Of a DNA stretch of 64,000 nt, positions 360-64,000 are shown in pieces. Below the pieces are notes generated by a model. That model was not told the DNA's origin, searched no databases, and saw only the letters and a list, made by a program, of their open reading frames with translations. This DNA is from Macrostomum lignano (taxonomy: Eukaryota), in assembly GCA_002269645.1 (NCBI GenBank), contig NIVC01001406.1, forward strand, positions 1 through 64,000, read 5' to 3'. Made by a program: the position numbers and the translations under genes. Each line of letters begins with the position of its first letter. Position 1 is the stretch's first letter.

Positions 360-585
360 AGACAGCGTCAAAACCCAGGTTCGATTCCCATGTGCGTGGC
401 CACATTAGTGACTGGCAAGTTTAAATGTGTCAGAAAATTGACCTGGGGCTTGTGCGATTCGCGCCAATTGAAGGCTAACCTCCAAGGTACAGAGTGTGTA
501 CATGTCTGACATTAGTCGAGCATGCGAGCATTAGTCCCTCGCATCTTTAGTGAAGTATATGCGTATGAAGTATGTAGTGAAACAT
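360..585 (+). mobile_element. tRNA-SINE family copy (diverged)
   Basis: B box GGTTCGATTCC at 378-388; body gctaacctccaaggtacagagtgtgtacatgtctgac is similar to the other copies. Confidence 0.55.
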
Positions 586-591
586 GCTTGG

Positions 592-733
592 GCGCAACCT
601 AGGGATTCACCCGGCCGTTTCTTTTGGCAACACACACATTGGACGGAATAGTAGTCACGTGACTGCTCTCAGCCAATAGCGACTTACATGTGTGTGTTGC
701 CAATAGAAACAGCAGTGATTCCCAAGGTTGCGC
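592..733. mobile_element. Foldback element/MITE with imperfect TIRs of about 47 bp
   Basis: gcgcaacctagggattcac...ttggcaacacacacat versus atgtgtgtgttgccaa...gattcccaaggttgcgc; central GTCACGTGAC palindrome. Confidence 0.6.
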
Positions 734-1347
734 ATGTATGAAAGTTAACAAAGTCTTGAAGTCGTAACTCTATTTAAATTTCAGCTTTTTATTAAATTGT
801 TTTTTTTTCCCACTCGGACTGGCACTGCCTGCCTATGTTGATATATTTTTAGTAACAATTAGTTAAAATATGAATCAAGGGTGTACTTTATTAACCATTC
901 GTAATATAGAATAGACAATTTAAAAAGTAATAGAGAAAAGTAGCTGTTTTAATAACATTTCTAAAACAAATTGAAAGTTACCGTATCTAAAGTGTTGGAA
1001 TTAAAGGATAAACAGTAAGTAAACACGGGAGTGCAGTATTGCAGTTATGTGGAATGTACACGAGAGCTTCTAGAATTCAAACGTGTAAAGAAATGAGTTG
1101 AAAAAATTGCCACTAAAACAAGACTAGAGAATGTAGAAATTTAATAAACTACACAGAGATATATTGCCTTTAATGTTGCCAATGCATTTGACGATAAAAC
1201 TAGGTTAAAAAGATAAAAAGACAATAAAGTGGAGATTGCACAAAAAAGCAGAACAGATTCCTATGGAATCGAAGCCAAATTGTTAATTAATGTTAAATTA
1301 TGAACAACTCAGCTGGATTTCGTACTCAATCTTGCCGTAGCGAGAGC

Positions 1348-1417
1348 TCACATCACGTACCGAGGATCTTCTGCAGCAGTGCTGTCAAATCCCATTGGCA
1401 GGCTGCCAGGAAATAGT

Positions 1418-1457
<40 letters not shown>

Positions 1458-4400
1458 GCGGATCCGAGACTGGAACGGCGAACGCTTGGTGTGACGACCG
1501 TTTGACAACTTCGCCCCATTCGTCTGCAAAGCAAGCGCAAAATGAATTGATAAGGCGAATTCCTTATATGGAAAGTACAGTATGTTAATTCTAAGACTGG
1601 AAAAAGATAACTCTGTGAAGGACTGATAAGGAAGTAGCCGCACTTAGTGAAGAACTGATAAGGAGGCAGTGGCACTCTGTGAGGGACTAATACGGAGGCA
1701 GTGGCACTCTGTGAAGGGCTGATAAGGAGGTAGCCGCACTTAGTGAAGAACTGATAAGAAGGCAGTGGCACTCTTTGAAGGACTGATAAGGAGACAGTGG
1801 CACTCTGTGAAGGACTGATAAGGAGTCAGCGGCACTCTGTGAAGGACTGATAGGGAGGTAGCGGCACTCTGTGAAGGACTGATCTGATAGGGAGGTAGCG
1901 GCACTGTGAATGCCTGGGGATGGTAGAGACAACGTCCTCCTATAAAACGCAGGCTCACTTCGTTCTTGTCTGCGGTTGCGCATCTGCCGTTTGAAGATTA
2001 GGACGGCAACAAAGACCAGTATGGAGAATCCGATCACGCAGGCTGAAATGCAGTTGGAAGGCTTTTTAATAAAGGCAGGTAGAGAACTTCGGGAAGGTAC
2101 TTTTGTACTTCAACCTGCAGACAAACTGAGCAATCCCCTCCGTACGGAACAAAACCCGGAGCTGGGAATCAATGTGACTTCTAAATATTTTTTCCACTTT
2201 CTTTCTAAACTCCATGGAGCAGAGGCCTAAATAAGGAACCACAATGACGGGACTACGATCCGGCTCGGGGTTTTGTTCCGTACGGAAAAGACCGCTCAGT
2301 TTGTCTGCAGGTTGAAGTCCCGTGTTCCTGGACATCAACCAACATCACCTAGAACATCACCTACATTGGTAACACTAAGCGACACTTGTACACAAGGGTT
2401 AAGGAGCATTGGATTAGAAATTCTGCCATCAATGAGCACCTTCTCACGTGCAACTCCTGCTGCAATATGAACTGTTGTGATATGTTTAAAGTTATCGTTT
2501 CCTGTAGCAAAGAAAACAAATTGAACATTCTCGAGGCTATGTACATCAAGGCTCAGAAACCAAGTTTGAACAGCCAGTTAGCCATGGGGGGTGCAAGCCG
2601 CCAACTCAATGTGTTTTAGCTACGTTGGCAGTCTCGTTGAACTTTATTTAGGTTTTCTTTCTCTTGCTAACCGGACTGGACTGAAATTGATTTGCACTTG
2701 GCATTGTACAGTCTTCATTTCTTAAATAAAATATATAACTTGGTTCTGTGTGATTAATTGACGCGTCTGCCCTGAAGATGACCGATTGTGGTCGAAATGC
2801 ATTGGCAAAACTAAAATGTTGATTTTGAGTTTTCTCTACCATGCAGGAAGGGACACTGGCCTGCCTAAATTTTCTTCATGTTTGATGTTTAGTCTCGTCC
2901 AATTCTCTTAACTTACAACAGATCTTCTCACAAATTTTGATAAAAGGCTTCAACTTCTCTTTATTGCAATCATTACGAGTACCTGTCACCTTTAAAAGTT
3001 GACTTTGAAATTTGACAGGGTTCAAGGCAGCAACTATGACGCGCTACGACCCTTGGTTTGATTTTATGAAAGGCCAAATGAAAAGTCATTTAAGAGCCTG
3101 TGCGCAAAGATTGGTTTCGGGGTTGTTGTGCGATTCAAAGCCATGAGAGCCAACCACCAAGGCACAGAGTGGACATGTCTGACAGTTAAAAAGCCAGGGC
3201 TATTGTACACCCTGTGTGAGCGTGTAACTGTGTGTAGCTGTAGCATCAGTCCTATCAAAATTTGAAAGAATGTGCTCAGAAACTCGCCTATCTGTTGTGT
3301 GCAAACGAAAGAACTAGACTAAACATGCACAAAATTTCGGGTAGGGCAGTACAAAAAGAGGCCTCCCCGATTTGAAACGCCAATCAAGTTGTGCATGCCA
3401 GCGGGGCGGCTCACATAGCACCATGACGATGAACACTGGCAGTGTCATATTGGCGATGCGGCCAGTGCAGGAATAAGCGAATTCGTCCGAATTATCGTAG
3501 CAACTATCGAATCCGTCGCACACAAGCGAATCGGGTAGACAGCGGTAGCGGTAGTGCCAGCAGCTGAAGTAGCCAGTCGGACAAACAAAGGAGGAGCCGC
3601 GCAGAAAGCTGCTCAGAGTGACATCGAATGCATCCTGGCGTTGTACAGTTCGTTTGGGATCATCCGGATTATAGGACAGCATGATCTTCTGCGACGGGCC
3701 TTTGGTCTCGTCAAAGTGCAGATCGGGGCATTTCTGCAGATAGTTGGTGCAGTTGCAGCTCATCAGCGGCAGCGGGTCGGCTGGCACACGGACCTCGGAG
3801 CCAATCCACTCGTCTGGCACTACATCCATGCGCCAGCCAGTGAACATGTACACTGTGAAGGTTGGGCAGCTTTGACCGATTCTGCGCAGGTCGACTTTGT
3901 TCAAGCGTACAGCGATGTACAAGTTTGGATCTGGTGCTTCAAAGTACATTGTGCAGTTAAAATTGGAGACTATTGGACCATTTGTAACACGGAATCCATG
4001 GCCTCGCCTTGTGGTGTCATAGCAGGAATCCATTTTAACTGTGTTTTGAAAAAAAACATTAAAGAATCAAATTAATATTATACTATATAGTTGTTAAATT
4101 ATATCGATCAATAGTTGAATGATTAGTTAATATAAAAGTCCTAATTAAAAGTAAAAATTAAGAAAAACTTATATCATTCTAAAAAATGCTATTTTAAGTA
4201 GGATATAAAATAGATCTTATAGCATGAATAGATTTTAATACATTTTATCTAGTACCATTATTTTTGTAATTTATATAATTTTATGTTATCATATATATCA
4301 AGGCGGAAGGCCTTTTTGTTTCAATAGATGGAATGGCAGCGAAGAGTTTATGCTGCTTTGTGCGTGTATTTATATATTTACAAACAACACCAGATAGAGG

Positions 4401-5426
4401 GGCCAAGCCAAGGGAGGTGCAAAACAGGTGGCATGGCGTGATTGGCTATGCCAACCCCCTGGCTTAGGGAGCCAGCTAGCGTGGTGCGCAACCACCCCAC
4501 CTCAGCTAGACAGAGGTTGGGGGGGGTTTCCAGTGTGGCTGCACTGGTGCTGCCAGTCACGTACAGTCTGGCCGCCACAATATCATCATTATTATTGTAT
4601 TCTGCTTGAATGTATCTACCTATCATTCATATAAGACATTTAGGCTATATCTATGATGGCAATCTAGTATACCTATATATTAACAGTGGCGCAACCAGGG
4701 GGGGGGGGGGGCGGTCACCCCCCCCTTAGGCGGGGGACCGAAAAAAATCAAAGGGGGGACCAAGCGAATTTTCGCCAAAAACAGAGCCACCCCTCCACCG
4801 CCCCCCCCCTCCCGGACTTTACCCTCAGAATCCACCCCCCCTTGAAAAATTTCTGGTTGCGCTACTGTATATTAATTTCTTTTTTTAAATGGTTATTTTA
4901 TATAATATTAGATGAAATTCAGCTTTTATCTTTTTTTAAATACTTTCTCATACAGGACTTGCTTTTTTCCTTTATTAATATATAACTCTTTATCTCAAAG
5001 TGAGCAAGTCTAGTTTAAAAAATCATCATTTATATCATTGTCATAAATACTAAATAGGACATAAAAGCTTTTATGCTTTAAGTAGTTAAAACATAAAATA
5101 TGTCAAAAGCTAATTGGACATGCTTATAAATCTAAGTAGGCCTAGGCTGAATTATTTAATAAAATATACACTCAAATACAAATATTTAAAAAATTATACT
5201 TAAATAACTTCAGCTAAAAACTAAACAAATGGGCCTTCTTGAACTTTGGGTAGATATAGTAGTGCTATTAATATATATTTATGATGTCATATGACAAAAT
5301 ATAAAGCGTATAGACCACTAAACTTAAAAACATGAAATGAAATTTCTTACCTTCAGCAGTAAACGAAATTACAATTTGAGGAAGGTAAACGACTACCAAC
5401 ATTAAACTGATGCACAGGCTGGCCAT
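1348..5426 (-). CDS. Single-pass membrane receptor: signal peptide, CUB-like domain, LDL-receptor class A repeat, TM, cytoplasmic tail with polyQ (LDLRAD/Neto-like architecture); 4 exons
   Basis: Exons on minus: 5426-5351 (MASLCISLMLVVVYLPQIVISFTAE, donor gtaag, phase 1); 4038-3415 (KMDSCYD...CPTGYFSCWHYRYRCLPDSLVCDGFDSCYDNSDEFAYSC, an LDLa motif, then start of TM; donor gtgag, phase 1); 2042 to about 1914-1906 (SCVIGFSILVFVAVLIFKRQMR; donor uncertain); 1523-1348 (EWGEVVKR...QQQQ...EDPRYVM*). All junction phases are compatible. Confidence 0.8.
1607..1905. repeat. 32-bp minisatellite in the last intron of the LDLa gene
   Basis: Unit ggcactctgtgaaggactgataaggaggcagt; copies at 1671 and 1703. 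Confidence 0.9.
2107..2318. mobile_element. Foldback element/MITE with imperfect TIRs of about 60 bp
   Basis: acttcaacctgcagacaaactgag...ccgtacggaacaaaacc versus ggttttgttccgtacgg...ctcagtttgtctgcaggttgaagt. Confidence 0.65.
2341..2860 (+). mobile_element. 5'-truncated Penelope-like retroelement (GIY-YIG endonuclease C-terminus plus 3' region) in an intron of the LDLa gene
   Basis: ITYIGNTKRHLYTRVKEH...SAINEHL...LNILEAMYIKAQKPSLNSQL* at 2356-2619, followed by a hammerhead motif; 3' boundary approximate. Confidence 0.8.
2768..2807 (+). ncRNA. Minimal type I hammerhead ribozyme motif
   Basis: TGCC-CTGAAGA-T-GACC-gattgt-GGTC-GAAA-TGCA-TT-GGCA: stem I TGCC/GGCA, core CUGAAGA and GAAA, stem II GACC/GGTC, very short stem III with palindrome ATGCAT. 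Confidence 0.75.
3015..3245 (+). mobile_element. tRNA-SINE family copy (diverged)
   Basis: gagccaaccaccaaggcacagagtggacatgtctgac...cagggctattgtacaccctgtgtgagcgtgt matches the family body and tail. Confidence 0.6.
4684..4867. mobile_element. hAT-type MITE (184 bp)
   Basis: 15-bp TIRs CAGTGGCGCAACCAG / CTGGTTGCGCTACTG (one mismatch); 8-bp TSD TATATTAA at 4676-4683 and 4868-4875. Confidence 0.85.
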
Positions 5427-8103
5427 CTTTTAACTGCAATCGAAAGAAATTCTGAATGCCTCTAAATTGTTATATAAAAATTGCTACACCAAGGTTAACG
5501 ACATATGTCACTAACTATACGTTTGTTGATATGCCCCTGGCTAGCTGACCTAAGTATATACAATTAACTTCCCGAAAATAGAATAAAATGAATTAACGCT
5601 AAAGCGATACTTAAACTTTGTGAAAACATTACATTACTCAGAAGCTACATAAATAAACGATATAAAACTTAGCAGATGGGTTAAAAACCAAGTAAATTAG
5701 ATTACCGATTTAATAATTGCAATGATTTGTTTTACTAGGTAATAACGAAGCTTGTTGCTTTGGTTCCAGATTCCTAGCCAAAAATTGTTACTGCTTTTGG
5801 TAAAAGGCAGGCCTAATGTTCACCTTTTGATATTAATTACCTTTCTTATACCTCTATTAGTATTAATAAACCATTTTATTTTGAAAAGTAGAATTGTCTT
5901 AATACACCAAAACCGACGCGATGCTTGTGTGTTGCAAGTGAACTCTTTCACTACTAGCAAGTCAGCATCGAAACTTATATGGGAAAACTGCAAGTTTTTC
6001 GGATCAGGCTTTAGCCTATTTTTATGTTATAATTTCATATCCAACATCTCAGTGTAACTCGTCGTATGCAGGCTGTAGCGTACGTGCCTAAAATCATGAA
6101 AATGGCAGAGCTCTATTTTATTTTTCTTAGCTTGATGACTGCAAGGACAACTTAAGTTACTTGTTGTATATAACTTGAGTAGTCCTTGAATGACTGTGTA
6201 GCAAAATGCTTAATCCAATGATAAAATAGATTCATAAAATTATGAGCCCAGAGTTGTGGCATTTTTAAAATTAATACGAGCTCGAATCCTAGTTTTCTAA
6301 ACGAAAAACTTTATTAATGGAATAGCTAGCTAAAAGAAAGGCAAGTCATAGCAAAAGATGAACATTGGGTCTCATGCCTCCTATCAAAAGCAATAACAAG
6401 ATTTGTGCCGAAGAATGAAAACTGCCTGCCTATCTCGATCTGTAATGTATACTTTTTGGTAAAACCTGTATCCTAAAATTTTCCAAGAAACGTGTAGTTT
6501 CCTTTCCTACTTGAGTAGTTCTTAAAATAATCCCGATTACGCCCTGTTTAATTAGCCTATCTGGCGAATAAGATATCTTGCTAACTGCAAAAAAAGCAGG
6601 AAAAAATCAATTAATTTTTTCCAAGCTATTTGATTTTCACGAGCTCCCCGGGTGTAAAAAAACATGTATACATATGAATGTTACTGTACTTTGAGCTATT
6701 AGCAGCCATGAATTGAATACAGTATAAAATTATTAATATTATATTAACTATAGTTAGCATATAGAAGCGAACATTTCGATACAGCTGTGCCCCCAGTGCT
6801 ACCCCCACTCTACGAGTTACTGTAGAATTGAGAAGCCAACAGCTCTTAAAAGGGGAGATCTTTGTTAGATAAAAACGACGGAGAACTATTTGTATAAGAT
6901 TCAGAAAGAGTCCAGCAGGTTTTACTTCTTTAAGACAGAACGCTTTCGATCCAGTTCAGAAGAGTCGATCGATTAAATCGTTTGAACAATCGACCCCTCT
7001 TTCTGAATTAGTTTCTACTTCTCAATCCATATGAGTGGGACACTCCAAATAAGGGTGTGTTCAGCTCAGCGCTTGTTCTACATACAAAAGCGAAACTTGG
7101 CTTTGCCTATAGTTATAAACCACAACTGATTTGATCTACGAGCCACATACGAGTACTCGATCGGTTCCTCAAAACGGATTCTGCTAGTACTTTATCCAAT
7201 AAAATAAACCAGGGAGTATCTGATCGTTGTCAGGAAAGTGGCAATTTTTAGAAGGCATGCAAGATGACAGACGGAAACAAGCTGTCATGTTTCATTTTCC
7301 TCAAACTTTTTTGCTCATTTTTGTCGGAATCCGATATTATCCGATTCCCATAAAGCGTTAGCAGCTCTCTCAAGTACCCAGAGCACCTCATACGAGCGTA
7401 CAAGGATGACAATACTGACTTTTTCATTTCTACGCGTAGTTGTTGAAAATTCCCTGGCCTGTGAGACGCACGCAATAAATCGCTAGGTCAAACCTCTGCT
7501 TAATTGGTCGATCGCGCAACCCTGCCCCCCGCAATAGCACAAACTCTATAGCCTGATCCTGTTGCCAGCCAGAAATGCACCGCAGGCAGAAGCAGAGCTC
7601 ATTGAATTGCATAGAACATTAGAACGCTCGCCAAACAACCGCAACTTGCTTGCGAATGGGATCAACCTCTGCCCGCGCCTCGAGGAAGAAAGGATTAAAG
7701 AAGAAGCGTGCCTGCTTAAAGAGAGAAAGACGATTGGGAGTGGGAAAAATCTATTGTACGCAACGAAACTGACCGGGCCACCACTCTACTCCGAAGTGCC
7801 GAGCAAAATTCAGTCCTAAGTACTGCAGACCAACTGTATGGAGGTTGGCTAGGGGCACAACAGCCAATGGTGGGGCGGCCAGTTGTCCAGATCGCTTTTG
7901 GATAGACGAATTGGGAAGAATGAAGAGAGATCGAAGGGTAGTAAGTTTTGACGCAAAAAGGGCGGGGCCTGCTGGGTGAGTCCCATGCGGTAGTAATCGA
8001 CAAAGAGGGGTATCGACGGCTCCAGCTAGACAATAACGCGGCCAGAAAAAGGTCATAGATAGGTATAGACCAGGTTTTTCATAGACAAGGCGTCACGTAT
8101 TGA

Positions 8104-11100
8104 ATGTCGTCGTTAAATGCCACGGCAACGACCGCCCTGTGCGTGGCCAATCGCAGATGGTACGTGTACCTCTCGTCCAGCGGCATCGCTCTCGCTAGCG
8201 GTGTGACTTTGGTGCTGCTATACCGCCTAGCCGAGTACCTGTTCGTGCGATATGACTCTTATCAGCGCTCCCGCCGCGTCAAAAGCGACACTGAAAACTC
8301 AAGTAATGCCAACGCCAACGCTCCCGGCGAGCAAACATCCGAGGATGAGGGCCCGAAACTAAGCTGGACGACTGAAGCCAAGGACTGGGCTGGGGAGCTG
8401 ATTTCTGGCCAGACAGCCACCGGGCGTATCCTTGTTGTCCTGGTCTTCCTAGTCAGCATCGCATCGCTCGTCGTGTACATAGCGGACACAGTGCGAATGG
8501 TGGAAACTGAGGAGTGCGTTTCCTGGCCAGAGAACGTTAGCCATCAAGTCGATTTAGCTTTTAACATTGTGTTTCTATTGTACTTTTTTTATCAGGTTCA
8601 TAGCTGCGCATGACAAGCTGTGGTTCTGGTTCGAACTTTACAGTCTGGTGGACATCTTTACTATACCACCCAGTTTCGTGGCCATTTACATGAATCGAAC
8701 TTGGATCGGACTACGATTTACCCGGGCCTTGCGGATCCTCAGCTTACCGGATGTTCTTCAGTATCTGAATGTGCTGCGCACAAGCACCAGTATCCGCCTG
8801 TTTCAACTCATCACATTTTTTGCCTCGTTGGTTCTTACAGCTGCTGGTTTCATTCATCTAGCCGAGAATTCAGGTGATCCTCCATCGTTCACCAACCGAA
8901 ACCGTAACTTTGACATGAACTATTTTACCTGCATCTACTTTGTGATAGTAACCATAGCCACAGTGGGCTACGGAGACGTTTTTTGTACGACCACAACGGG
9001 TCGGATATTCTCAGCGCTGGTGATCATGGGAGGTCTGGCCGTGTTTGCTAACTCCATCCCGGAGATCGCAGACATTCTCAGCTCGCGCAACAAATACGGC
9101 GGCCACTTCCACAAGGAAGCTGGTAAGCAGCATATCGTCCTGTGCGGCCACATCACCTACGAATCTGTATCTAACTTCCTCGGCGACTTTCTACATGAAG
9201 ACCGCGAGGATGTCGACGTTCAGATAGTAATATTGGACAAGCACGTGCCAGATTTAGAGCTTCAAGGTTTACTAAAGCGACACTTCACTCAAGTCGATTT
9301 CTTCCAGGGCTCCGTCATGAACGCGCGCGACCTGGGCCGTGTAGATCTGCCCACAGCTGACGCATGCCTGGTGCTTGCCAACCGCTACTGCCCCGACCCG
9401 GACGCCGAGGACGCCGCCAATATAATGCGAGTCATCTCCATCAAAAACTTTTGCGACCACATCAAGGTGATTATCCAGCTGATGCAGTACCATAACAAGA
9501 CCTATTTGTTAAACATCCCCAGTTGGGATTGGAAACAGGGCGATGATGCTGTCTGCGTAGCTGAACTGAAACTGGGCTTCATAGCGCAGAGTTGCCTGGC
9601 TTTCGGTTTCTCCACCCTACTGGCAAACCTTTTCACAATGCGGAGCTACCGTGAGGGCAAGGAGATGCCAGTGTGGCTCAACAACTACCTAGAGGGCGCC
9701 GGAGCCGAGATGTATACCGAGTTCCTGTCGCCAGCTTTCGAGGGACTAACTTTTCCAGCAGCTGCTGAGCTCTGCTTCAGCAAGCTTCGTCTGCTTCTTA
9801 TTGCAGTGGAGGCTAGGAACGACGCAAATAGCTCTGAAAGCTGCATCGCTATCAATCCAAAAGAAAACGTTGTCGTGCAAAAAGGCACGCAAGGATTTTT
9901 CGTGGCACAGTCGGCTGAAGAGGTAAAGAAGGCCTACTTCTACTGCAAACGCTGCCACGGTGACGTAGACGATGCCAAGCTGATCAGAAAGTGCCGCTGT
10001 CGATCTGTCGCCGAGAAGCCACCTTCAAAGATGATTTTCCGCAATCGCCACGCGAATGCCAAATTCCCGAAGACTGTTGAGCAGCAGAATTCAGCTCGAA
10101 ACGGTAGCGCCGGCGTCGCTGATGGAACTCCAGTGGGCGAGGCTACGGAACTACGACAGCTCAGGGGAGGTAGGAAACAGTCGATGATTGTGAGCGCACA
10201 AGAAGCCAAGCTGCTGGACCAGGTAGAGAGAAAATTTGACTCAACTGGCATGTTTCACTGGTGTCCAGATGTTAGTTTCGAGGAAGCATTGCTCGATCGG
10301 GAGCAGATGTCACTGACTGTTTTCAGTAATCATATTGTTGTTTGCCTATTCGCCGATGCATCTAGCCCATTAATTGGCTTGCGCAGTTTTGTCATGCCAC
10401 TCAGGGCCAGCAATTTTCATTACGGCGAATTGCGTCACGTGATCTTCGTTGGCAATACCGACTACATGCGCCGCGAGTGGAAGACGCTGATGAATTTTCC
10501 CAAGCTGAGTGTGTTTCCCGGATCCCCCTTGAACCGGTCCAATCTTCGCGCCGTGAACATTAACCTGGCCCAAATGTGCGTAGTTCTCAGTTCAAAGCAG
10601 AACTCGGGCGGAGACGATGCAACTCTAGTTGATAAGGAGGCCATTCTCTGCTCCTTGAACATCAAAGCGATGACCTTCGATACGCCGCCAGAGAGTCGGC
10701 GTCGAGCAAATAATGTTCGCGTCCTGACCGAGCTGGCCGTGGACGGCAACGTTCAGTTTCTCGACCAGGATGATGACGACGATCCAGACACGGCGCTGTA
10801 CATGACACAGCCCTTCGCTTGTGGCACCTCCTTTGCTGTCAGCGTGCTTGACTCGCTGATGAGCACTGCCTACTTCAATGAAAACGCCCTAACACTTATC
10901 CGTACGCTGGTCACGGGCGGCGCCACTCCGGAGTTGGAGCAGATCTTGGCGGAGGGCGCCGGCATACGGGGCGGCTTCAGCAGTCCGGAGACGCTACGCA
11001 ACCGAGACCGGACTCGGGTCACTCAGCTGCCACTTGCAGACGACCGGCTGCGCGAATTGAGTCAGCCGGGCAGTACGTATTCGGACCTGTTCCTGGGCGC

Positions 11101-11308
11101 CCTGCGGCGCCACGGCATCCTCTGCATCGGCCTCTACAGGTTCCTAGCGGCCGAGCACGAAGCGACCGACAGTGAACAGCAGGCGACGCCACCGGCGCCT
11201 TACAAGCGATACGTCATCACCAATCCGCCGGCAACTTTCCGCATCCTGCCCACCGATCACGTGTTCTGCCTGCAGCGGTTCTCCGCCACAGAGTCGAATC
11301 CGGCTTGA
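8104..11308 (+). CDS. slo: Slo1/BK large-conductance Ca2+-activated K+ channel alpha subunit, intronless, with one +1 frameshift at the T7 run 8584-8590 (about 1067 aa if corrected)
   Basis: S0 ([11 protein letters not shown]), [24 protein letters not shown]4 LRFTRALR, selectivity filter TVGYGD, RCK1 [14 protein letters not shown] motif, calcium bowl [12 protein letters not shown] and TQPFACG. ORFs 8104-8613 and 8567-11308 join into ...[15 protein letters not shown] if one T is removed. Confidence 0.95.
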
Positions 11309-12954
11309 GGGACAGAGAGACCCTGGCTGTCCTGACTATTATCGATTTTGACGATCTTACTGAGACATTGGAGACTTAATATGATCCTCACGCAAAGCAA
11401 ACACATACAGTCAATAGTAAGCACAGTGTTTGTGGCTGGGATGGTTTTGATACAAATGATCAAACATCAAATGAAGATGTTCGATAAGACACACGGAGAG
11501 AGCAACTAAGGGCTTTGTTTCCTCTACAAATTTTTTTGGAGACCCATGCACTGCTTGGCACGAAAAGCATATACGGTAGAGCCTCAGTTCAATCGTCAAA
11601 AGCGATGTCTGCACAATAACCCTGTCGTTGTTTTTCTTGTTGATTTCATTTTTTTAAGTTAATCAGTAAATTTCATCTGACAATGATACGTGTATTGGTG
11701 CTTTGAAAATTTCTTAATTAGAGGTTTATTGCTTTAGACAGTTGTAGGATATTCAGCACCCGTCCATCTGTAAATACGAGATATTATTGAGCACCCTTAA
11801 TGGTTAATGTATAATACTAAATACCCAATCTAAATCTGTCATGTCGAAAGAGCTATTTTCAAATCAAAAATGCTCAAATAGTCTACTCCTTTATCCATTG
11901 ATATAACATGTTTAACTGCACCTGTCGCCTTAACCGCGCTCTTTCTTCTCTGGACAGAATTACGTTGACGCTATTGACTGTAAGTTAAATTAATGCCCCA
12001 TTCTGACCTGACAATCACAAGCCTAGATACATGGAACATTTGACTTAATTCTCCTCATCCTTCCTGCATTATTAGCATACAAAATTCCGAGTTGTTATTT
12101 AGTCTTACATGACTTTCACTTACAGTAATTTAACAACCGAATTAAAGCCAGTGCATGTTTGTTGTGTAAATAAATGATTACCCGATGCTGGACATTAAAA
12201 ACAATTCTTTAAAGAATTACAGTGAGAATTATAACGAGCTATTCTGTATAGAAAAGCAAAAGAAAACTGCATTTTACAATATATGTACCTCCCACTGTTG
12301 GTTTATAAAGTGCCTGCATTCGAGCGCCCTTCCGATTCATAAGAGAACTAATATGCATGACCCCGACCAGGGAGTAACAGGCCAATGCTGAGCTAAGGCG
12401 TTGCAATTACAGTGCTGCCATATATGCTGAGCCTCCACGCCTGAAAGGACGTACCATATTGATTTGCTTCACGCTCTCAGTATCTGGGTGAGCAGTATGC
12501 TCACCCTCCCCCCGACCGTCCTATACTGAGTCAGACCCACTAACTGGCTGACAAGACTATTTTATTTTCTAAGGCGGACGACTGCAGGCCCGATCGGAAC
12601 AAAAAATCCAGTATGAAAAGAAACAACAGGAGCAATAGTTTTATAAGGATCTCTCTCTCTACCTCTCTCTCTCCCGGAGTTCAATTTGGGTAGTTGGGTA
12701 AGTGGGTGGCTTCGGAGAGGGAGGGGGGTTCACCCTTTAGTGCGAGCGTGAACCGATTTTAGCGCGGATCACGCGACTCTCCGCTGTGTTCAGGAAGCCC
12801 GCCAGACCTTCTGCTCTTGTTGTGCACTATTGAACTGCTACTTAGTAGCCAGTTTGCTGTGCTGCCAGAGAGGGAGAGAGAGAGAGAGGGTGAGGAAGAG
12901 AGAAGGAAGGAGAGCCGGGTGGCGCCCCTGCAGTCGAGCTTCGGGTGGATGAGT

Positions 12955-13280
12955 CAGGGACTTCTCTATATAGCATCTGGACTGGAAGCTTCGCAATTTT
13001 TTTCCGTCTCTATACCTCACAGGGGCAAAAGAAGAAAAGACCCAGAAGGAGGAAAGGAGACAGGAAAAATTTAACTGTCAAGCTGGCCATAAACATGACA
13101 AAGACACTGTACACAGACAGGGACTTCTCTATATAGCATCTGGACTGGAAGCTTCGCAATTTTTTTCCGTCTCTATACCTCACAGGGGCAAAAGAAGAAA
13201 AGACCCAGAAGGAGGAAAGGAGACAGGAAAAATTTAACTGTCAAGCTGGCCATAAACATGACAAAGACACTGTACACAGA
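12955..13280. repeat. 163-bp perfect tandem duplication (left end of the P element)
   Basis: 12955-13117 is identical to 13118-13280. Confidence 0.9.
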
Positions 13281-13567
13281 AAAGAAGCAAAGTTCAGGGG
13301 CATGCAGGGAAGAGCTCATGGGGTAAATTTTATCCCCCAACAATGAATCTTTAACATGTACGTTTATCTTGAAAACTAGTCTGCTATTCGGACTGAGTCA
13401 TGAGTGGAGGTGATGAGTGGGAGTCCCACTCCCACGTTCTATATATACTGACGAGCTGGCTGTACTGTACAATAATGGAAAAGAAAATTTTGCCTTCAGT
13501 GCCTGCCTCATCAATTTCACAATACTGCTGCAGTTGCTTCAAGCACTGACAATTGTGTTCCAACAAA

Positions 13568-14630
13568 ATGGTTAAGTCGTGCTCAGCACAGGGCTGCACT
13601 AATTGAGCCTCCTCGGACAAGGAGCTCTCATGGCTATCCTATGCACAATGCAGTCCTTCTTGAACAATGGAAGCGAGCAAATCCAAGGCAGAACTTCGAG
13701 CCTACCAAGAGCTCAACCATTTGCTCTGCGCACTTCCACCCCAAGACTTCGTGGAAAACTCTCTGGACACCAACGCGAACCGCAAGAAGGGCCGGGACCA
13801 ACTGTCGAGGCGGTGTCTGAAGCCAGGGGCGGTGCCGTCTATCTTCCCGAATAGACTTATCTCTCTTCTTATCTCTCTTCTGCCAAGGCGGAACCGAGGT
13901 CAACTGCGGCAACATCAACTCAGCGCTTGGAGAGAGAAAATACTGCACTGCAAGGCCAAATTGATGAGTTCCGAGATGCGGACTCAATCGTTGACGACTA
14001 CCTTGATGAAGTGCAGCTAAAACTGAATCGAGAGGAAGAAAAACCGGTAGGATTTCTTACCATCATGCTTGCTGACCAGCTGCATCTACGCGCTGAACAT
14101 GGAGCCTTCCTTTCATGTCTCATGCTACATCTACATGGCTAAGGACCACAGCATCACTATTGGAGTCAATGGAGTGTTGCTAAAGCCAACCCGACTCAGA
14201 GACTTACTTTCGGACGGGAAAGTATCGACTCTCAGTCAACTAGTCAACATAATGTCCAAAGTCAAGAACTGGGAGGTAGACACTGACAGTGCCAAAGCTG
14301 AAGGCAAGGCCAACCGTATGCTTGACATGGCCCAAGATCTTCTGGAAGAAGCGGAGAATCTTGTTGAGAATCGCACTGTTGGCTTCATTTTGGAGCAGCT
14401 GAAACTCAGCAGGCAGCCGAGCTGCAGAAGGAGATATTCACAGCAGCTCATGATCTTCGCTTATGTTCTGTACTCCACCAGCGCTTCGGCTTATAAGACA
14501 ATACTGGAGCAGGACGTCCTCTGTTTTCCATCTGATCGAACCCTTCGGTCTGCTTCAGCCAAAGTTGGTTCAAAGAATGGTCTAGACATCGAAAGCTACC
14601 TTCAGTTGAGAGCATCGAAGTTATCGAAAT
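13568..14630 (+). pseudogene. Degenerate THAP-domain P-element transposase (THAP9-like), lacking the DDE core
   Basis: MVKSCSAQGCTN*...W.RANPRQNFEPTKSSTICSAHF...LKPGAVPSIFP (THAP C2CH, with a stop and frameshifts), then RRYSQQLMIFAYVLYSTSASAYKTILEQDVLCFPSDRTL, typical of P transposase N-terminal regions; truncated near 14630. Confidence 0.85.
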
Positions 14631-16258
14631 TTATCGAAATTTTTAATAATCGAAATTATTAAAAAAAGAAATCTAAATCATTCTGAATGAATTTTTATTA
14701 GGCTCATGATTTATATAACAATAAGTGCATAATGGCCAGCTATCTAATATACGATGTAACTAGGATCTAAGCTATTTTGGGAAGGGCTTTTGCCCCTCTA
14801 AGGTATATGCGGGTGGGGAGCTTCCAGTCCAGATGCTATATAGAGAAGTCCTTGGATGAGTAGTCTAGAGCAAAAAAATACTGGGCAGAAGCACACTTAT
14901 CTTCCTCGAGAGAAGTCGACTGAGCTGGGGGGGGGGAGGCGAGCAGATAAACAAGAACTAATCATAACGGACTGCAATTCTGAGCTATGAAGATAAAAAA
15001 ATTCTCTAGCAAAGATTAAAATACACTCACTTGTTGCATTCGCCCGAAACTTCTTTTGTTCCACGAGGGCGTATTTTGCTTTCAAAAAAGAGATTTTCCT
15101 GCCTTGCGATTTCATGGTAGACTTTCCCTACAATGAGCGTATTAATATTATTAACAAGATCCTACTTGGCTGCTTCTGTTCAATCGATAACGCCATGTCT
15201 TGAGGCTGTGCTCAAATAATCAAGCTTCGGTTGTGCAGTAGATCATCAATAATGCATGGTTTTATCAAGCCTACATATGTGTCATTCTCGAACTGATTTT
15301 TCTAATTTACTCAATATCATTAGTAAATTTTCGGGTGTATTTCTTGTGAGACCCTTTTCATTCTTGTGAGTAATCAATTGAAAGTCAATGCCTTAAAAGC
15401 TTATCGAATAACTTTGTGTTATTCGACATAGAGTTGGGTGTATAGAGATAGCGTTTAATGCACCACTGAATCGTGTTACAAATGCATTGCATTTCTGTTT
15501 TCTTGTGGCTGTTGCTGTCTCAAAAAATTATTATATCTTTCGGATGGTAGCTCCATAAAATCTGTTCAGACTACTCACAGTACGAGCTATGTAGCTGGTA
15601 CCGAGACTTTTTCAAAAAAAACATTCATCCTACATATTGAGGTCTCTTAAATCGCTTGAAGAGGAAGTTGTTTCAGCTGTTTAAAGTAGACAACAGGTGG
15701 GCTCATAAAAGTATTCTATAAGCTTTAGTTTCTCTCCAATAACAGCTGCAGCAACGTTGAAAGACAAAATGCGCGTATAGTGTGCAGTTCCATAATTTGG
15801 AATATCGAGAATGAACCACAGGAACACTTTTTAAACTGCGCACTGGATTTCTTCTTTAAAGAGCTACAGAGAAGAGAAGTTATAAGCCGGGTGCAAAATT
15901 TGGCAATTTGGCGCAGTCACCTGAACAGGCATGATTCGGTTACCATCGCCGCAGCGGTGCGTCATTGCGGCCGCAGTCTGCACAGCGGCTTTCATCGGTT
16001 TGAGCAGCGTAAGAATAATTTGCTAATCTCAAGATATTGTTATGGGGAATAAAAATGAAATTGCAGAAAGCTCGGGACGTGCGGCTTCTCTTGGTAGCTA
16101 TACTTCAGATGCGATGTCATCATTTGGATCCTCCAGGTCTGCAGATGGGCTCCAGAGCAGTGAATGTACTCTTTAATTTTAACTTTGCCTAGTCAAACCA
16201 AGCACAATCTCAACACTTATCTGTTTCTCACCTGATCAGACCAAAAAATACAATCCAG

Positions 16259-29245: not shown

Positions 29246-29667
29246 AAGTTTCAATTTGTTTGGCTGTTGTTTGAATGTGTGAATGAAAAGCACACGTTTG
29301 CTTAATTTGCAGTTCGGAAGTCCAGAAAGTGAGACATTGGGAGTTAAGCAGAAAACAGAAAATTCCTGTCTTTCTGGCATTTTGCAGCGAAAGTATGCGG
29401 TCAGTTTAGGCTCACCAATTCTCGCTCAAATATGCAGTCGGCTGCGCAGTGAAGAACCAACACTGACTGGATCAGTTAGTGACGGAGATTCGGGCTGGCG
29501 GCTGAGGAATCAAAACGGGAAATGTGAAGGAAGCGAAATTTCGAGGGCGGAACTCATAGGCGATCTGAAGCATCGTGGCAACTGATAAACTGTGATTTGT
29601 CGGCAAGCCTTAGGCCATCCAGTCATCCTGCCATCCAGTCAGTGATTTTATTGTCGCTGATGGCAGT

Positions 29668-33130
<3,463 letters not shown>

Positions 33131-42400: not shown

Positions 42401-45400
42401 TGATTTCGGGAGGTTTCACTAGCAATAAACATTCGCACAAAAACATTGAATAAAATAATATTATCGATTCTAAACAACAATCTCTCTTCTTCATGGAGCA
42501 TTGAAGCTCACGGACTTAAATATTCTTCACAATCAGCATGCAGCGCTTTATTGCTTAGAAGTCCTTTTTGATTGCGTCCCCTGGTCCGGAGTGTTACTTC
42601 TTGTCTACTTATTTCGGCCACATGCAGCTCACCAAGCCTCTCTATTCTCCTCTCTCCTCTCATCTCTCCTCTCCTCTCTTATCTCTCTCCTCTCTCCTCT
42701 CCTCTCTCATCTCTCTCCTCTCTCCTCTCCTCTCTCATCTCTCTCCTCTCTCCTCTCCTCTCTCATCTCTCTCCTCTCTCCTCTCCTCTCTCATCTCTCT
42801 CTTCTCTCCTCTCCTCTCTCATCTCTCTCTTCTCTCCTCTCCTCTCTTCTCTCTCCTCTTCGCTCTCCTCTCCTCTCTTCTCTCTCTTCTCCTCTCCCCT
42901 CTCTTCTCTCCTCTCCTCTCTTTTCTCCTTTCTCCTCTTCTCTCTACTCTGTCTTCTCTTTTATCTCATCTCTCCTCTCTTCACTTCTCTTCTCTTTCTC
43001 CCCTCCTCTCTCCTCTCTCCTCTCTCCTCTCGCCTATCCTCCCTCCTCTCCTCTCCTCTCTCCTCTCCTCTCTCCTCTCTTCTGTCCTTCCCTCTCTCCT
43101 CTCTCCTTTCTCCTTTCTCTTCTTTCTTCTTCTCTCTCCTCTCTCCTCTCCCTTTTCATTTCTCCTCGCTTTCCTATTCCATCTCCTCTCTCCCCTCCTC
43201 TGGCCCGCAGTCATGCGCTAGATTCTCCACCTGGGCCTGGAGTCAAAGAGTTTGCCAAGCCCTGACTTAGCTAATGTTTACAATTTTGGGTATATGACGC
43301 ATGAATAACAGGTATTTACCGAATTTAACTCTTTCCACAAACTTTTGACATAAAAGAATTCAATTTGTTTTCACCCCCCGCAGCCGGTCCCACAGTGATA
43401 CTGCTTGGCATCTACATCAACGGGTTCAACTACATCAGCGAGCAGTCCATGGTGCGTAGACGTACTTTGGGTTTGTAAACAAAAGAGCGCTGCGCACTGG
43501 CCGATCGGGTTGAAAAGAAATTATGAAAGAAAAAAATTTGAGCACAACTGCCAGCTGCTCCCCCAAATTCGATTGAAGTGGCCAGCAGCTCATGCATAAT
43601 CCTTGAGCCTCCTGTGTCTGCTCCGCCCCGTCCCGCGCTTTGAGTCCGGTATGGGGGACGCTATGGGCTGTTTTTTTTTATTATTCACCCATGGGACGCT
43701 TTCTTAAGCTCCGAAAGGGGGGTGAGTAGACTTGAGCATATGCCCAGCCGAGTGTGCTGAGACTTTCAAAGCCAGTTGCGGGGCGAAGGTGGAAAGGAGG
43801 GCAATAAAGAGGATTGGCCCAGCCAAGCTAATAAATCGCACTCTGAAACCCGCGGCGCCGTGACATTTACAATTCAGAGTCTTCTGTCTGTCGCCGGCTG
43901 GAGAAGGCGGACCCCCGCTGCGCCTTTCCTTCCTCTCCCCGGTTTTACAATTCTCAATGCGGGCTTTCTCAATATTAAGGAATTCTTAATTGCATTTGCA
44001 TAGCGGAGAGGACCACCTGGGGTGCAGTGCAAGCAGGGTTTGATCCGATTGGACTCGCCAATTTGATTAAGGAAAGTGGCTCAGCTGGCCAAAATCGATA
44101 TTGTACTACTCCGGGAACTCGAAATTTCATTTTAATTGCTCTCGCCTTAGCCCAAAGTACCACCACAAGTTAAGCAGAATTGGCCGCGGTTAGTACGCAG
44201 ATGGTGTAGAATACAGTCAGGAAGCTGCTATCTCGCAGTGACAGCCCCTCGGATTCTCACACCTGGTCACCTGTTTTACTCTGACCGCACAACCGAAATT
44301 CTTCAAGGACTACGAAATCAACTTGTACCTGCGAGAGCAATGGTGGGACCCGCGGTTGGCTTTCAACGAGACACAACTGTGCGGCGTCGAGTTTATGAAG
44401 CTGCCCGACAGAGCGTGGGACAAAATCTGGGTGCCGGATGTGTTCTTCCGGTGAGTGTGACCGGTGTCTCTGAGGTGCCGGATGTGTTCTTCCGATGAGT
44501 GTGACCGGTGTCTCTGAGGTGCCGGATGTGTTCTTCCGGTGAGTGTGACCAGTGTCTCTGAGGTGCCGGATGTGTTCTTCCGGTGAGTATGACCGGTGTC
44601 TCTGAGGTGCCGGATGTCTTCTTGCGGTGAGTATGACCGGTGTCTCTGAGGTGCCGGAAGTCTTCTTGCGGTGAGTATGACCGGTGTCTCTGAGGTGCCG
44701 GATGTCTTCTTGCGGTGAGTATGACCGGTGTCTCTGAGGTGCCGGAAGTCTTCTTGCGGAGAGTGCGACCGGTGTCTCTGAGGTGCCGGATGTCTTCTTG
44801 CGGAGAGTGTGACCGGTGTCTCTGAGGTGCCGGATGTCTTCTTGCGGTGAGTGTAATTGTGCGCTAAGCTGTTAAATTTCTATTGGAGCTGTGCAGGTTG
44901 AAGGGAATACATGCACATTGTTACTTTTCTACACTTCCCCCATTTTTAAGGAACGAGAAGAAGGCCGCGTTTCACGAAGTAACTCTGCCGAACCGGCTCA
45001 TGCGACTCTACCCCAATGGCACCGTGTACTATGCTGCTAAGTGAGAGCTGACTGACTGACTGACTGACTGACTGACTGACTGACTGACTGACTGACTGAC
45101 TGACTGACTGACTGACTGACTGACTGACTGACTGACTGACTGACTGACTGACTGACTGACTGACTGACTGACTGACTGACTGACTGACTGACTGACTGAC
45201 TGACTGACTGACTGACTGACTTAAGTGAGTGGGTGACTGACTACTGACTCACCCTCGACTTCAGGATCACGGCCACCCTATCGTGCCAGATGAAGCTGCA
45301 CAAGTACCCCCTGGATACGCAGGTTTGCCCAATTCAATTTGAGTCGTGTGAGTCGCATCGATTTCTTCCATTTATTAGTATTTTTTACGTAGCTTTTCTA

Positions 45401-55234: not shown

Positions 55235-57105
<1,871 letters not shown>

Positions 57106-63249: not shown

Positions 63250-63704
63250 GTTCTAAATGCACCAGCAGTCTAGCGGTAGATTCTGCATTCAGTGGCAAGA
63301 GAGTTCGCAATCCGAAATCCCATAGGTTACCGAATAGTGCCTGCTCAGATACGGGCGTTAGCAACTGAGGGACTTACGTACAGAGAGGGGAAGAGAGCTG
63401 TCCAATCTAAAACCGGTCCACCCACCTCATTTAGTTTGTCGCCTCCAACACTTTGGGAAACTATATTAGTGAGAGAAAAAAGTGTCGGGGAAAATTAGCC
63501 CAGTTTTGGGGAAATTTTCAGCCTAAAGCGCCGCGTCATCTCCTCACCCATCCGGACTTTCAATTCAGACTATTGAAGTCCCGATCGGAGAAACGCAACG
63601 CCAACAGCGCAGCGGCGGCGGCGACGACGGCGGCTAACGCCAGGTCGAAGAGCAGCAACCGCAGCAGCAGCTGGGCCAGCGGCATCCGCTTGCGCACCGG
63701 CGGC

Positions 63705-64000
63705 ATGGGCTGCGGCCCGTCGTCAAGCGACGACGCTTCGGCGAGCGGCGACAGCAAAGAGAAGGACGCGGCCTCGGCTGGCGAGATCAGCATCAGGTCG
63801 GCGGTGCTCATCCAGAAGTGGTACCGCCGGTACAAGGCCCGGCTGGAGGCCAGGCGGCGCACCACCTGGATGATCTACCAGAGCATCGAGTACTCCAGCG
63901 AGTCCAGCCAGCTGCACCTGTACAATTTCTTCAACGACATGCTCAGCCTGACCGGAGTCGGCGGCGGTGGCCACCCGTCGGGAGCAGCCGCCGCGGAGCC
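63705..64000 (+). CDS. PPEF: PPEF/rdgC-family serine/threonine phosphatase with EF-hands, N-terminal part (continues past the window end)
   Basis: MGCGPS acylation-type N-terminus, then the IQ motif and conserved block [49 protein letters not shown] typical of PPEF1/2, rdgC and PEF-1; no stop before 64000. Confidence 0.88.

Follow-up and report, generated by a model that had tools for sequence, protein, structure and literature searches.

A BK channel gene without coding introns in the flatworm Macrostomum lignano

BK channels are a classic example of functional diversity obtained from a single large gene whose many exons are alternatively spliced. In the annelid Capitella, the Slo1 orthologue spreads 22 coding exons (~21 introns) over 21.3 kb. 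Among solved structures, the best match to the protein described here is the BK channel of Aplysia californica (PDB 5tj6/7rjt; E = 0 and 1224 bits, in an alignment that extends from S3 as far as the C-terminus). We analyzed a Slo1 locus in a 64-kb stretch of the Macrostomum lignano Mlig_3_7 assembly (GCA_002269645.1, NIVC01001406.1:1-64000), hereafter the window, and compared it with its sister copies, with more distant paralogues and with Slo1 genes of other animals.

The Slo1 locus and its reading frame

Positions 8104-11308 of the forward strand encode, on contiguous DNA and without introns, a complete Slo1/BK alpha subunit that runs from S0 to RCK2 and the C-terminal tail. When the window was searched with tblastn, the Slo1 similarity fell into two blocks that abut at a run of T, leaving no room for an intron, and no second Slo1 fragment was found elsewhere in the 64 kb. 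The contiguous, intronless S0-RCK2 coding region described in the initial annotation was thus borne out. Its further statement that this region is a single open frame lacking stops did not hold, because the coding sequence is split between frame 1 (8104-8613, 169 aa, terminated by a stop) and frame 2 (8567-11308, 913 aa). Dropping one T from the T7 homopolymer at 8584..8590, where frame 1 shifts to frame 2, rejoins the two frames. The repaired coding sequence consists of a first part at 8104..8589 (Met1-Phe162: N-terminus, S0, S0-S1 linker, S1, S2 and the start of S3) and a second part at 8591..11308 (Ile163-Ala1067 and the stop: S3-S6, pore, RCK1, linker, RCK2 and tail), both on the forward strand, and alignments to full-length Slo1 proteins span 98-100% of its protein product. 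The GenBank model of the window copy starts at a Met at 8690 and comprises 872 aa without S0-S3.

Directly upstream of the ATG of the window copy lies an in-frame TGA. The nearest upstream match to [T/C]TNCAG, the trans-splice/3' acceptor motif of M. lignano (PMC8629364), is found on the forward strand at 8020..8025, 78 nt before the ATG, and is a candidate acceptor site. A candidate polyadenylation signal (AATAAA, 12169..12174, forward strand) follows ~0.86 kb past the stop and is flanked by ATTAAA at 12141 and 12194.

The second part of the coding sequence matched the Pfam families Ion_trans, Ion_trans_2, BK_channel_a (2.6e-27), Slo-like_RCK (twice, E = 3e-71) and Slowpoke_C (3.2e-39), and the BK structures of Aplysia, Drosophila and human matched the window protein at E = 0. 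Alignment to these structures placed the 12-residue S4 voltage-sensor segment at 8711..8746, the K+ selectivity filter TVGYGD at 8960..8977 and the 12-residue calcium bowl of RCK2 at 10754..10789, all on the forward strand. The core of a six-TM voltage-gated K+ channel is present, with its GYG filter and arginine-bearing S4, and is followed by tandem RCK1 and RCK2 domains. The S0 hydrophobic segment (8152-8229, forward strand) and the conserved 13-residue S0-S1 linker motif both align with other Slo1 proteins, and are part of the window copy only once the T7 frameshift is removed. By these matches the locus is identified as encoding a Slo1/BK alpha subunit of the KCNMA1/slowpoke family. With S0, the S4 arginines, TVGYGD, the calcium bowl and the two RCK domains in place, the product is predicted to function as a K+ channel gated by voltage and Ca2+.

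The window protein and Aplysia BK, ~58% identical overall, agree in the selectivity filter (TVGYGD), the pattern of S4, the two RCK domains, the calcium bowl (DQDDDDDPD) and the Asp of RCK1 (HKD/HED). Both Ca2+ sites are kept, namely the calcium bowl in RCK2 and, in RCK1, the Asp of FLHEDRED that aligns with Aplysia D356. The proteins differ at Aplysia E363, E388 and N161, Mg2+-site residues at which M. lignano has Q, D and H, respectively. In human numbering (D99, N172, E374 and E399), the Asp is kept and the other three residues read His, Gln and Asp. The Gln lies in the motif VDVQIV (9212..9229, forward strand), at the position of Aplysia E363 and human E374, the RCK1 Mg2+ ligand, and is common to all M. 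lignano Slo1 paralogues. The Mg2+ site of the M. lignano channel may therefore be altered. This site is modulatory and does not define the Slo1/BK family.

The repaired protein keeps 406 of the 457 columns (89%) that are invariant in 20 other bilaterian Slo1 proteins. Compared with the paralogue group B described below, dN was 0.20 and dS about 1.56 (saturated), giving a dN/dS of about 0.13, and the group B copies differ among themselves by 23 synonymous and 3 non-synonymous changes. By these counts the gene is under purifying selection. The functionality that had been proposed from motif conservation holds for the gene family, in which all domains and motifs are present. The annotation of the genome is transcript-based (StringTie/TACO and a de novo transcriptome; PMC5730564), and the transcript evidence is common to the window copy and its 99%-identical sisters rather than copy-specific.

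Sister copies and the extra T

The window locus is copy g1 of a paralogue group, here called A, with transcript cluster Mlig031175. Its two sisters, BOX15_Mlig031175g2 (PAA85383.1) and g3 (PAA80341.1), are also intronless, and the three loci are ~99% identical copies with a common collinear flank of 15-20 kb that is 96-99% identical. Because of this common flank, the group A copies are best read as genome duplicates and not as separate retropositions. A 1.9-kb insertion at 12955-14852 is carried by the window copy only. The g2 copy encodes 1081 aa in 3246 bp, and the proteins of g2 and g3 are 100% identical to that of the window copy wherever both are in frame. Each sister has its own interruptions: g2 has a one-base deletion at the equivalent of window position 11241, which alters its C-terminus, and g3 (locus L004) has four one-base deletions. 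At the site of T7 both sisters have T6, and the proteins P0121, P0122 and P0123 read a 16-residue segment in frame there. A tiny intron or a programmed frameshift at T7 was considered and rejected, given that homology carries on to within a single nucleotide of the junction and that the sisters, with T6, are in frame.

The assembly was made with Canu from PacBio reads and polished with Pilon. One-base indels differ among all group A copies, and no multi-base indels occur in the coding region. Between the window copy and L004 their frequency is 1.56 per kb in the coding region vs 1.74 per kb in the flank. Relative to the flanks, the coding region shows a 4- to 6-fold deficit of substitutions between the group A copies; the window copy differs from its nearest copy (L003) by 5 substitutions, all synonymous, and the window-specific substitutions are likewise synonymous (4/4). 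A coding region in which substitutions are depleted but one-base indels barely so points to assembly noise. The extra T of T7 most likely stems from a PacBio consensus error that persisted in a region beyond the reach of short-read polishing.

Alternatively, the extra T could be real and the window copy a true pseudogene, a redundant copy beginning to decay in a hidden polyploid. Its reading frame is broken as it stands, and constraint on any one copy would be relaxed in a genome with 180 Mb of duplicated blocks (identity at least 95%) and, in the DV1 line, extra chromosome copies (PMC5730564). The sister L004, with four deletions and two non-synonymous changes (both Ser to Ala), suggests that some redundant copies may be decaying. 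Against this stand the exclusively synonymous window-specific substitutions and the contrast between depleted substitutions and barely depleted one-base indels, which is the signature of consensus error and not of decay. The indels differ in each copy and are never of several bases in the coding region, and the site itself is a homopolymer in a PacBio assembly. We consider decay of the window copy unlikely, with some weight left to it.

Paralogues and the origin of the intronless state

Two further groups of M. lignano Slo1 sequences were found. Group B (BOX15_Mlig033072g1 and Mlig007631g1/g2; 1161 aa in 3486 bp) is intronless at 3/3 loci, so that all six readable M. lignano loci of groups A and B lack introns. 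Group C is defined by protein models of the ML2 assembly only (UniProt A0A1I8JBG9); no group C locus was found in Mlig_3_7, where a search with P0125 gave only UniRef (ML2) models. In 200/200 bootstraps A, B and C group together, as a clade specific to the M. lignano lineage. Group A is ~70-75% identical in amino acid sequence to groups B and C (~70% to B), and no flank homology between A and B was found beyond the coding region. Most of the divergence between the three groups is in the N-terminus, the linkers S0-S1 and RCK1-RCK2, the stretch ahead of the calcium bowl and the C-terminal tail, and B and C carry the lineage-specific substitutions of A, for example Gln at E374.

In two ML2 gene models, P0004 and P0012, the group B linker lacks 95 or 81 aa, which are left out at GT...AG boundaries. 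These omissions could represent exitron-like splicing, and are more likely a patch by the gene predictor over assembly errors. In a sister lineage, one Logan contig (L007) of 6.4 kb, of genomic or transcript origin, carries an uninterrupted Slo1 ORF of 1105 aa; no poly(A), repeats or informative ORFs were found on this contig.

Since groups A and B are both intronless, A, B and C form one clade and no intron-bearing Slo1 was seen in either M. lignano proteome, we infer that the loss of coding introns predates the diversification of the family. The explanation we favour, and hold to be quite probable, combines a single ancestral intron loss, duplication to A, B and C, recent genome copies and an assembly error at T7. 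All coding introns would have been lost once, before A, B and C diversified, most likely by reverse transcription of a spliced transcript: either a retrocopy would have taken the place of its parent (retroposition), or cDNA-mediated gene conversion would have removed the introns in place. The intronless gene would then have been duplicated into A, B and C, and the recent genome duplication and aneuploidy of the DV1 line would have made further copies of each.

The locus resembles processed retrogenes and products of mRNA-mediated intron loss in that all coding introns are precisely absent though relatives are multi-exon, and in that the frame is intact except for the one-base shift at 8584-8590 and is under purifying selection. 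Unlike processed retrogenes, it lacks a poly(A) remnant and a detectable target-site duplication, no parental copy was found among the annotated proteins of two assemblies, and its state is common to old paralogues. The absence of a poly(A) remnant had been claimed before and was borne out: the interval 7000-15000 contains no A-rich tract and no run of A or T as long as 8, and no A tract follows the AATAAA at 12169. Target-site duplications are expected to be undetectable at such an age (dS about 1.56 between the paralogues).

The initial annotation had proposed that the locus is a retroposed paralogue, a retrogene of a conventional multi-exon Slo1 still present elsewhere in M. lignano. An intronless coding region does stand out against a genome mean of 4.9-5.0 introns per gene and against the 22 coding exons of the Capitella orthologue. 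Introns are also present nearby, in a Cys-loop receptor gene of the same window with exons at 44242-44451, 46750-47004 and 47738-47995 and minisatellite arrays in between; tandem repeats make up ~35% of the 64 kb. Of the neighbours with many satellite-filled introns that had been described, this single gene was confirmed. Among the best 120 matches listed per search, in searches covering two independent proteomes, no M. lignano Slo1 beyond groups A, B and C and none bearing introns was found, and a typical Slo1 orthologue would score within the range of these matches. The 6/6 intronless loci come from two long-diverged groups (dS saturated) within one clade, the poly(A) tract is absent, and the window copy is one of three near-identical copies with long collinear flanks. 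On this evidence a retrogene beside a spliced Slo1 is improbable, and the proposal is not supported in that form.

An old retroposition, as had also been suggested, fares better in part: an ancestral origin mediated by reverse transcriptase is plausible, and would be old and without hallmarks, whereas a young retrocopy beside a spliced parent does not fit. The initial annotation had itself named an ancient intron loss, leaving the lineage with only an intronless Slo1, as the outcome that would speak against a retrogene; what we found within M. lignano comes close to this. The window locus thus looks like the ordinary BK gene of M. lignano rather than a stray retrocopy. Finally, the idea that the intronless sequence is a cDNA contaminant or misassembled insert can be dismissed as next to impossible: the assembly is repeat-rich and hard to assemble, but the gene lies in collinear context on three contigs (295, 433 and 455 kb) and its homology continues through 15-20 kb of non-coding flank, paralogue B, too, sits within three contigs, and neither a poly(A) tract nor a vector-like junction was seen.

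Significance for BK channel diversity

The best 120 matches to the profile of A, B, C and P0005 came from molluscs, arthropods and annelids and included no other flatworm Slo1. The literature search yielded nothing on intronless BK genes in Macrostomum, nor any full text that mentions the locus tags. The finding of an intronless BK gene is real but modest, and no new kind of gene or mechanism is indicated. It has a practical side for users of the assembly: one-base indels truncate the public annotation of the window copy (872 aa, without S0-S3) and of its sisters, which calls for caution in gene-family counts and pseudogene calls on Mlig_3_7. The three compact ORFs of 3.2-3.5 kb could be cloned straight from the genomic DNA of a flatworm model that is ready for transgenesis.

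The segments in which A, B and C diverge (S0-S1 linker, RCK1-RCK2 linker, pre-bowl segment and tail) are sites of alternative exons in other species. A possible but tentative reading, to which we give the smaller share of our confidence, is that the sole Slo1 of the Macrostomum lineage lost ~21 coding introns and was then triplicated, so that diversity of the splicing type would now be hard-wired in three intronless paralogues, all with a remodelled Mg2+ site. With BK genes that lack coding introns and three diverged paralogues, M. lignano offers a natural experiment in how splicing trades off against duplication.

Coding region and predicted protein

We found that the Slo1 coding DNA at 8104-11308 (+) is contiguous and intronless from S0 to RCK2, as the initial annotation had stated. 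The same reading had reported no stops, which proved wrong: the ORF list gives two overlapping frames at these coordinates and no single 3.2-kb ORF. The N-terminal part of Slo1 lies in frame 1 (8104-8613, +, 169 aa) and the remainder in frame 2 (8567-11308, +, 913 aa). A three-frame reading of 8500-8700 showed a 14-residue segment followed by a stop in frame 1, and a 13-residue segment leading on in frame 2. The frames meet at a run of seven Ts (8584-8590), and removing one T from this run yields a protein of 1067 aa. Because the Slo1 homology is unbroken to within one base at this junction, no intron is hidden there. The GenBank product of the gene (P0001, 872 aa) was placed at 8690-11308 of NIVC01001406.1, a contig of 295,803 bp in GCA_002269645.1 (M. 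lignano Mlig_3_7) whose first 64 kb form the window; with its start Met at 8690 it lacks S0-S3 and is not the biological protein, whatever the cause of the frameshift.

The long frame matched the Pfam families Ion_trans, Ion_trans_2, BK_channel_a, Slo-like_RCK (two stretches), and Slowpoke_C, and its alignments to the BK structures of Aplysia, Drosophila, and human (E = 0) run from S3 to the C-terminus. Full-length Slo1 proteins of molluscs, annelids, nemerteans, and arthropods are 51-59% identical to the repaired protein over 98-100% of its length. The repaired protein contains the S0 segment together with a 13-residue motif, S4 (12 residues), the TVGYGD filter, the RCK1 Asp, and the calcium bowl (12 residues), and of the 457 columns without variation across 20 Slo1 proteins from outside Macrostomum, the window protein keeps 406 (89%). 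The one consistent departure is that His, Gln, and Asp are aligned with Aplysia N161, E363, and E388 (window 8600-8623, 9212-9229, and 9287-9304, +), positions that we take to be human N172, E374, and E399, the Mg2+ ligands. Gln at the E374 position is shared by all M. lignano paralogues (groups A, B, and C) and by a Slo1 relative from a Logan contig, P0005, and group C has Gln at the E399 position too, which suggests from the alignment that Mg2+ modulation is altered across the whole clade. On all sequence criteria tested, this modulatory site excepted, the window protein is a typical member of the Slo1/BK channel family.

A TGA in frame stands directly before the ATG at 8104, and the nearest match to the M. 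lignano acceptor motif [T/C]TNCAG (PMC8629364), a candidate acceptor, lies 78 nt upstream of that ATG (8020-8025, +). The Mlig_3_7 annotation was built on RNA-seq and a de novo transcriptome, and a common name prefix in it denotes transcripts at least 95% identical; the cluster Mlig031175, to which the gene belongs, is therefore transcribed, with reads not assignable to the window copy.

Sister copies and the extra T

The 90%-identity cluster of P0001 holds three further M. lignano proteins: BOX15_Mlig031175g2 (1081 aa, in 3246 bp of uninterrupted DNA on a contig of 433 kb), BOX15_Mlig031175g3 (475 aa, likewise uninterrupted over 1428 bp, on a contig of 455 kb), and one model from the older ML2 assembly. 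The window and the g2 and g3 loci share 96-99% identity, with interruptions, over 15-20 kb to each side of the gene. Such long collinear flanks mark these copies (group A) as genome duplicates or haplotypes and not as separate insertions, and their presence on three contigs excludes cDNA contamination, against which the initial annotation had cautioned. The duplication fits the makeup of the sequenced line DV1, which has 180 Mb of blocks of at least 95% identity and extra chromosomes (PMC5730564); M. lignano has been called a hidden polyploid (PMC10468722). Going upstream, homology with the g2 locus stops at 7149, about 950 bp from the ATG, whereas the g3 locus is collinear back to position 1, so the structure of the putative promoter region is not the same in the three copies. 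An insertion of 1.9 kb (12955-14852) occurs in the window copy and is absent from the other two. It starts with a perfect 163-bp tandem duplication (two copies, 12955-13280), contains an ORF at 14051-14659 (+) with a weak match to a P-element-transposase HTH (E = 3.5e-4, below Pfam's cut-off), and probably represents part of a transposon; the Slo1 stop codon lies about 1.65 kb upstream of it.

Aligning the three copies revealed private one-base indels in each: the additional T at 8584-8590 in the window, one deletion in g2 at the match of window 11241, and four in g3 (8391, 9901, 10260, and 10353). Substitutions behave differently. All five between the window and g2 are synonymous, and substitution density per kb is 1.6 in coding DNA against 10 in the flanks for g2, and 1.9 against 6.9 for g3. 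One-base indels per kb show little depletion in coding DNA relative to g3 (1.56 against 1.74 in the flanks), and stand at 0.62 against 1.9 relative to g2, where counts are small; multi-base indels were not found in the coding region of the A copies. Mlig_3_7 is a Canu PacBio assembly polished with Pilon, and one-base errors on top of selected divergence are to be expected where Pilon had no means of assigning short reads to one copy among several that are 99% identical. We therefore favor an assembly error as the likely source of the extra T. That it is instead a real and very recent pseudogenising mutation, private to this copy, seems rather improbable given such indels in all three.

Paralogue groups and their phylogeny

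Group B (Mlig033072g1 and Mlig007631g1/g2) has about 70% protein identity to group A and occupies three loci on three further contigs, each encoding 1161 aa in exactly 3486 bp; no flank homology between A and B was found. Group C (P0003/P0125) is known only from ML2-derived UniProt entries, and our statements on gene structure rest on A and B DNA. Two ML2 models, P0004 and P0012, omit a stretch of 95 or 81 aa in the RCK1-RCK2 linker (paralogue B aa 639-733; loci L005 and L002), using two GT donors and one common CAG acceptor within the ORF, and 15 aa of RCK1 are missing from the group C models. Rather than real splicing, these gaps more likely reflect a gene predictor bridging assembly errors.

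In a neighbour-joining tree (907 ungapped columns, 200 bootstraps), one of the checks proposed at the outset, A, B, and C formed one clade in 200/200 replicates. Within it A groups with C, B comes next, and P0005 is the closest outside sequence. The dN/dS estimate, the other such check, gave a ratio of about 0.13 for A versus B (dN 0.20; dS ~1.56, saturated), indicating ancient duplications and purifying selection on the family. No further M. lignano Slo1 appeared among the best 120 matches of each of three protein searches. The database includes two independent proteomes of the species, one from the transcript-based Mlig_3_7 annotation and one from ML2, and an orthologue of the usual kind should have scored about as high as the mollusc and annelid proteins listed.

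P0005 (59% identity) is encoded at 412-3729 of a 6448-bp Logan contig (L007, ERR14224704) and carries clade-specific substitutions, among them VDVQI and a 12-residue segment. Its uninterrupted ORF (1105 aa) is preceded by 0.4 kb and followed by 2.7 kb of sequence, and the contig may be a transcript.

Intron content and origin of the intronless state

The Slo1 gene of Capitella teleta (P0024) spans 21.3 kb with 22 coding exons, as determined by exact peptide matching, and M. lignano genes have a mean of 4.9-5.0 introns of 1.1-1.4 kb each (PMC5730564). The contrast with an intron-bearing neighbour, also drawn in the initial annotation, is real: exons of a Cys-loop ligand-gated ion channel gene at 44242-44451 (+, Neur_chan_LBD) and at 46750-47004 and 47738-47995 (+, Neur_chan_memb, M1-M3) are set apart from one another by minisatellite arrays with 44-bp, 4-bp, 27-bp, and 8-bp units, and this gene probably reaches beyond 44242-47995 on both sides. 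Tandem arrays are extremely dense at 22000-62000, with (GTCT)n over 3.4 kb (29666-33130), (GATA)n over 1.7 kb (55235-56938), and numerous minisatellites with 22-34-bp units, each 0.5-1.7 kb long; arrays scoring at least 200 cover about 35% of the window. Upstream of Slo1, the annotated gene at 3314-5426 (-) encodes 266 aa with a single LDL-receptor class A domain (E = 2e-5); as it extends over 2.1 kb, it must have at least one intron. A GC-rich open frame at 63435-63998 (+), which runs past the window end and weakly matches an IQ calmodulin-binding motif (E = 1.3e-4), may belong to a further gene as its first exon.

Since A and B are anciently diverged, fully intronless, and part of one lineage-specific clade, the simplest history is a single loss, in which all coding introns would have disappeared once, before A, B, and C diversified. 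That all introns were removed so precisely speaks for a spliced mRNA as the intermediate. Either a retrocopy could have replaced its own parent, or cDNA-mediated conversion could have altered the Slo1 gene in place; the data at hand fit both alike, and nothing separates them. The initial annotation had favored a paralogue made by retroposition alongside a spliced parent gene, which is not supported when both A and B lack introns within one clade, and the ancient intron loss that it had named as the contrary outcome largely holds, within the M. lignano genome. Its report of no poly(A) remnant was borne out, with no A or T run of at least eight in 7000-15000 and no A-rich sequence after the candidate AATAAA (12169), and target-site duplications would not survive at the A-B divergence. 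Among the marks of a retrogene, the lack of introns is the sole one observed; there is no poly(A) tract, and no intron-bearing parent turned up among the annotated proteins of the two proteomes.

Our literature searches turned up no account of BK genes without introns in Macrostomum, nor any full-text mention of these locus tags. We read the locus as a new, undocumented case of a well-known process, in which a gene loses all its introns by way of mRNA and is then duplicated; here the gene is one famous for splice-generated diversity. If the Logan contig L007 is genomic, the intronless state would reach beyond M. lignano.
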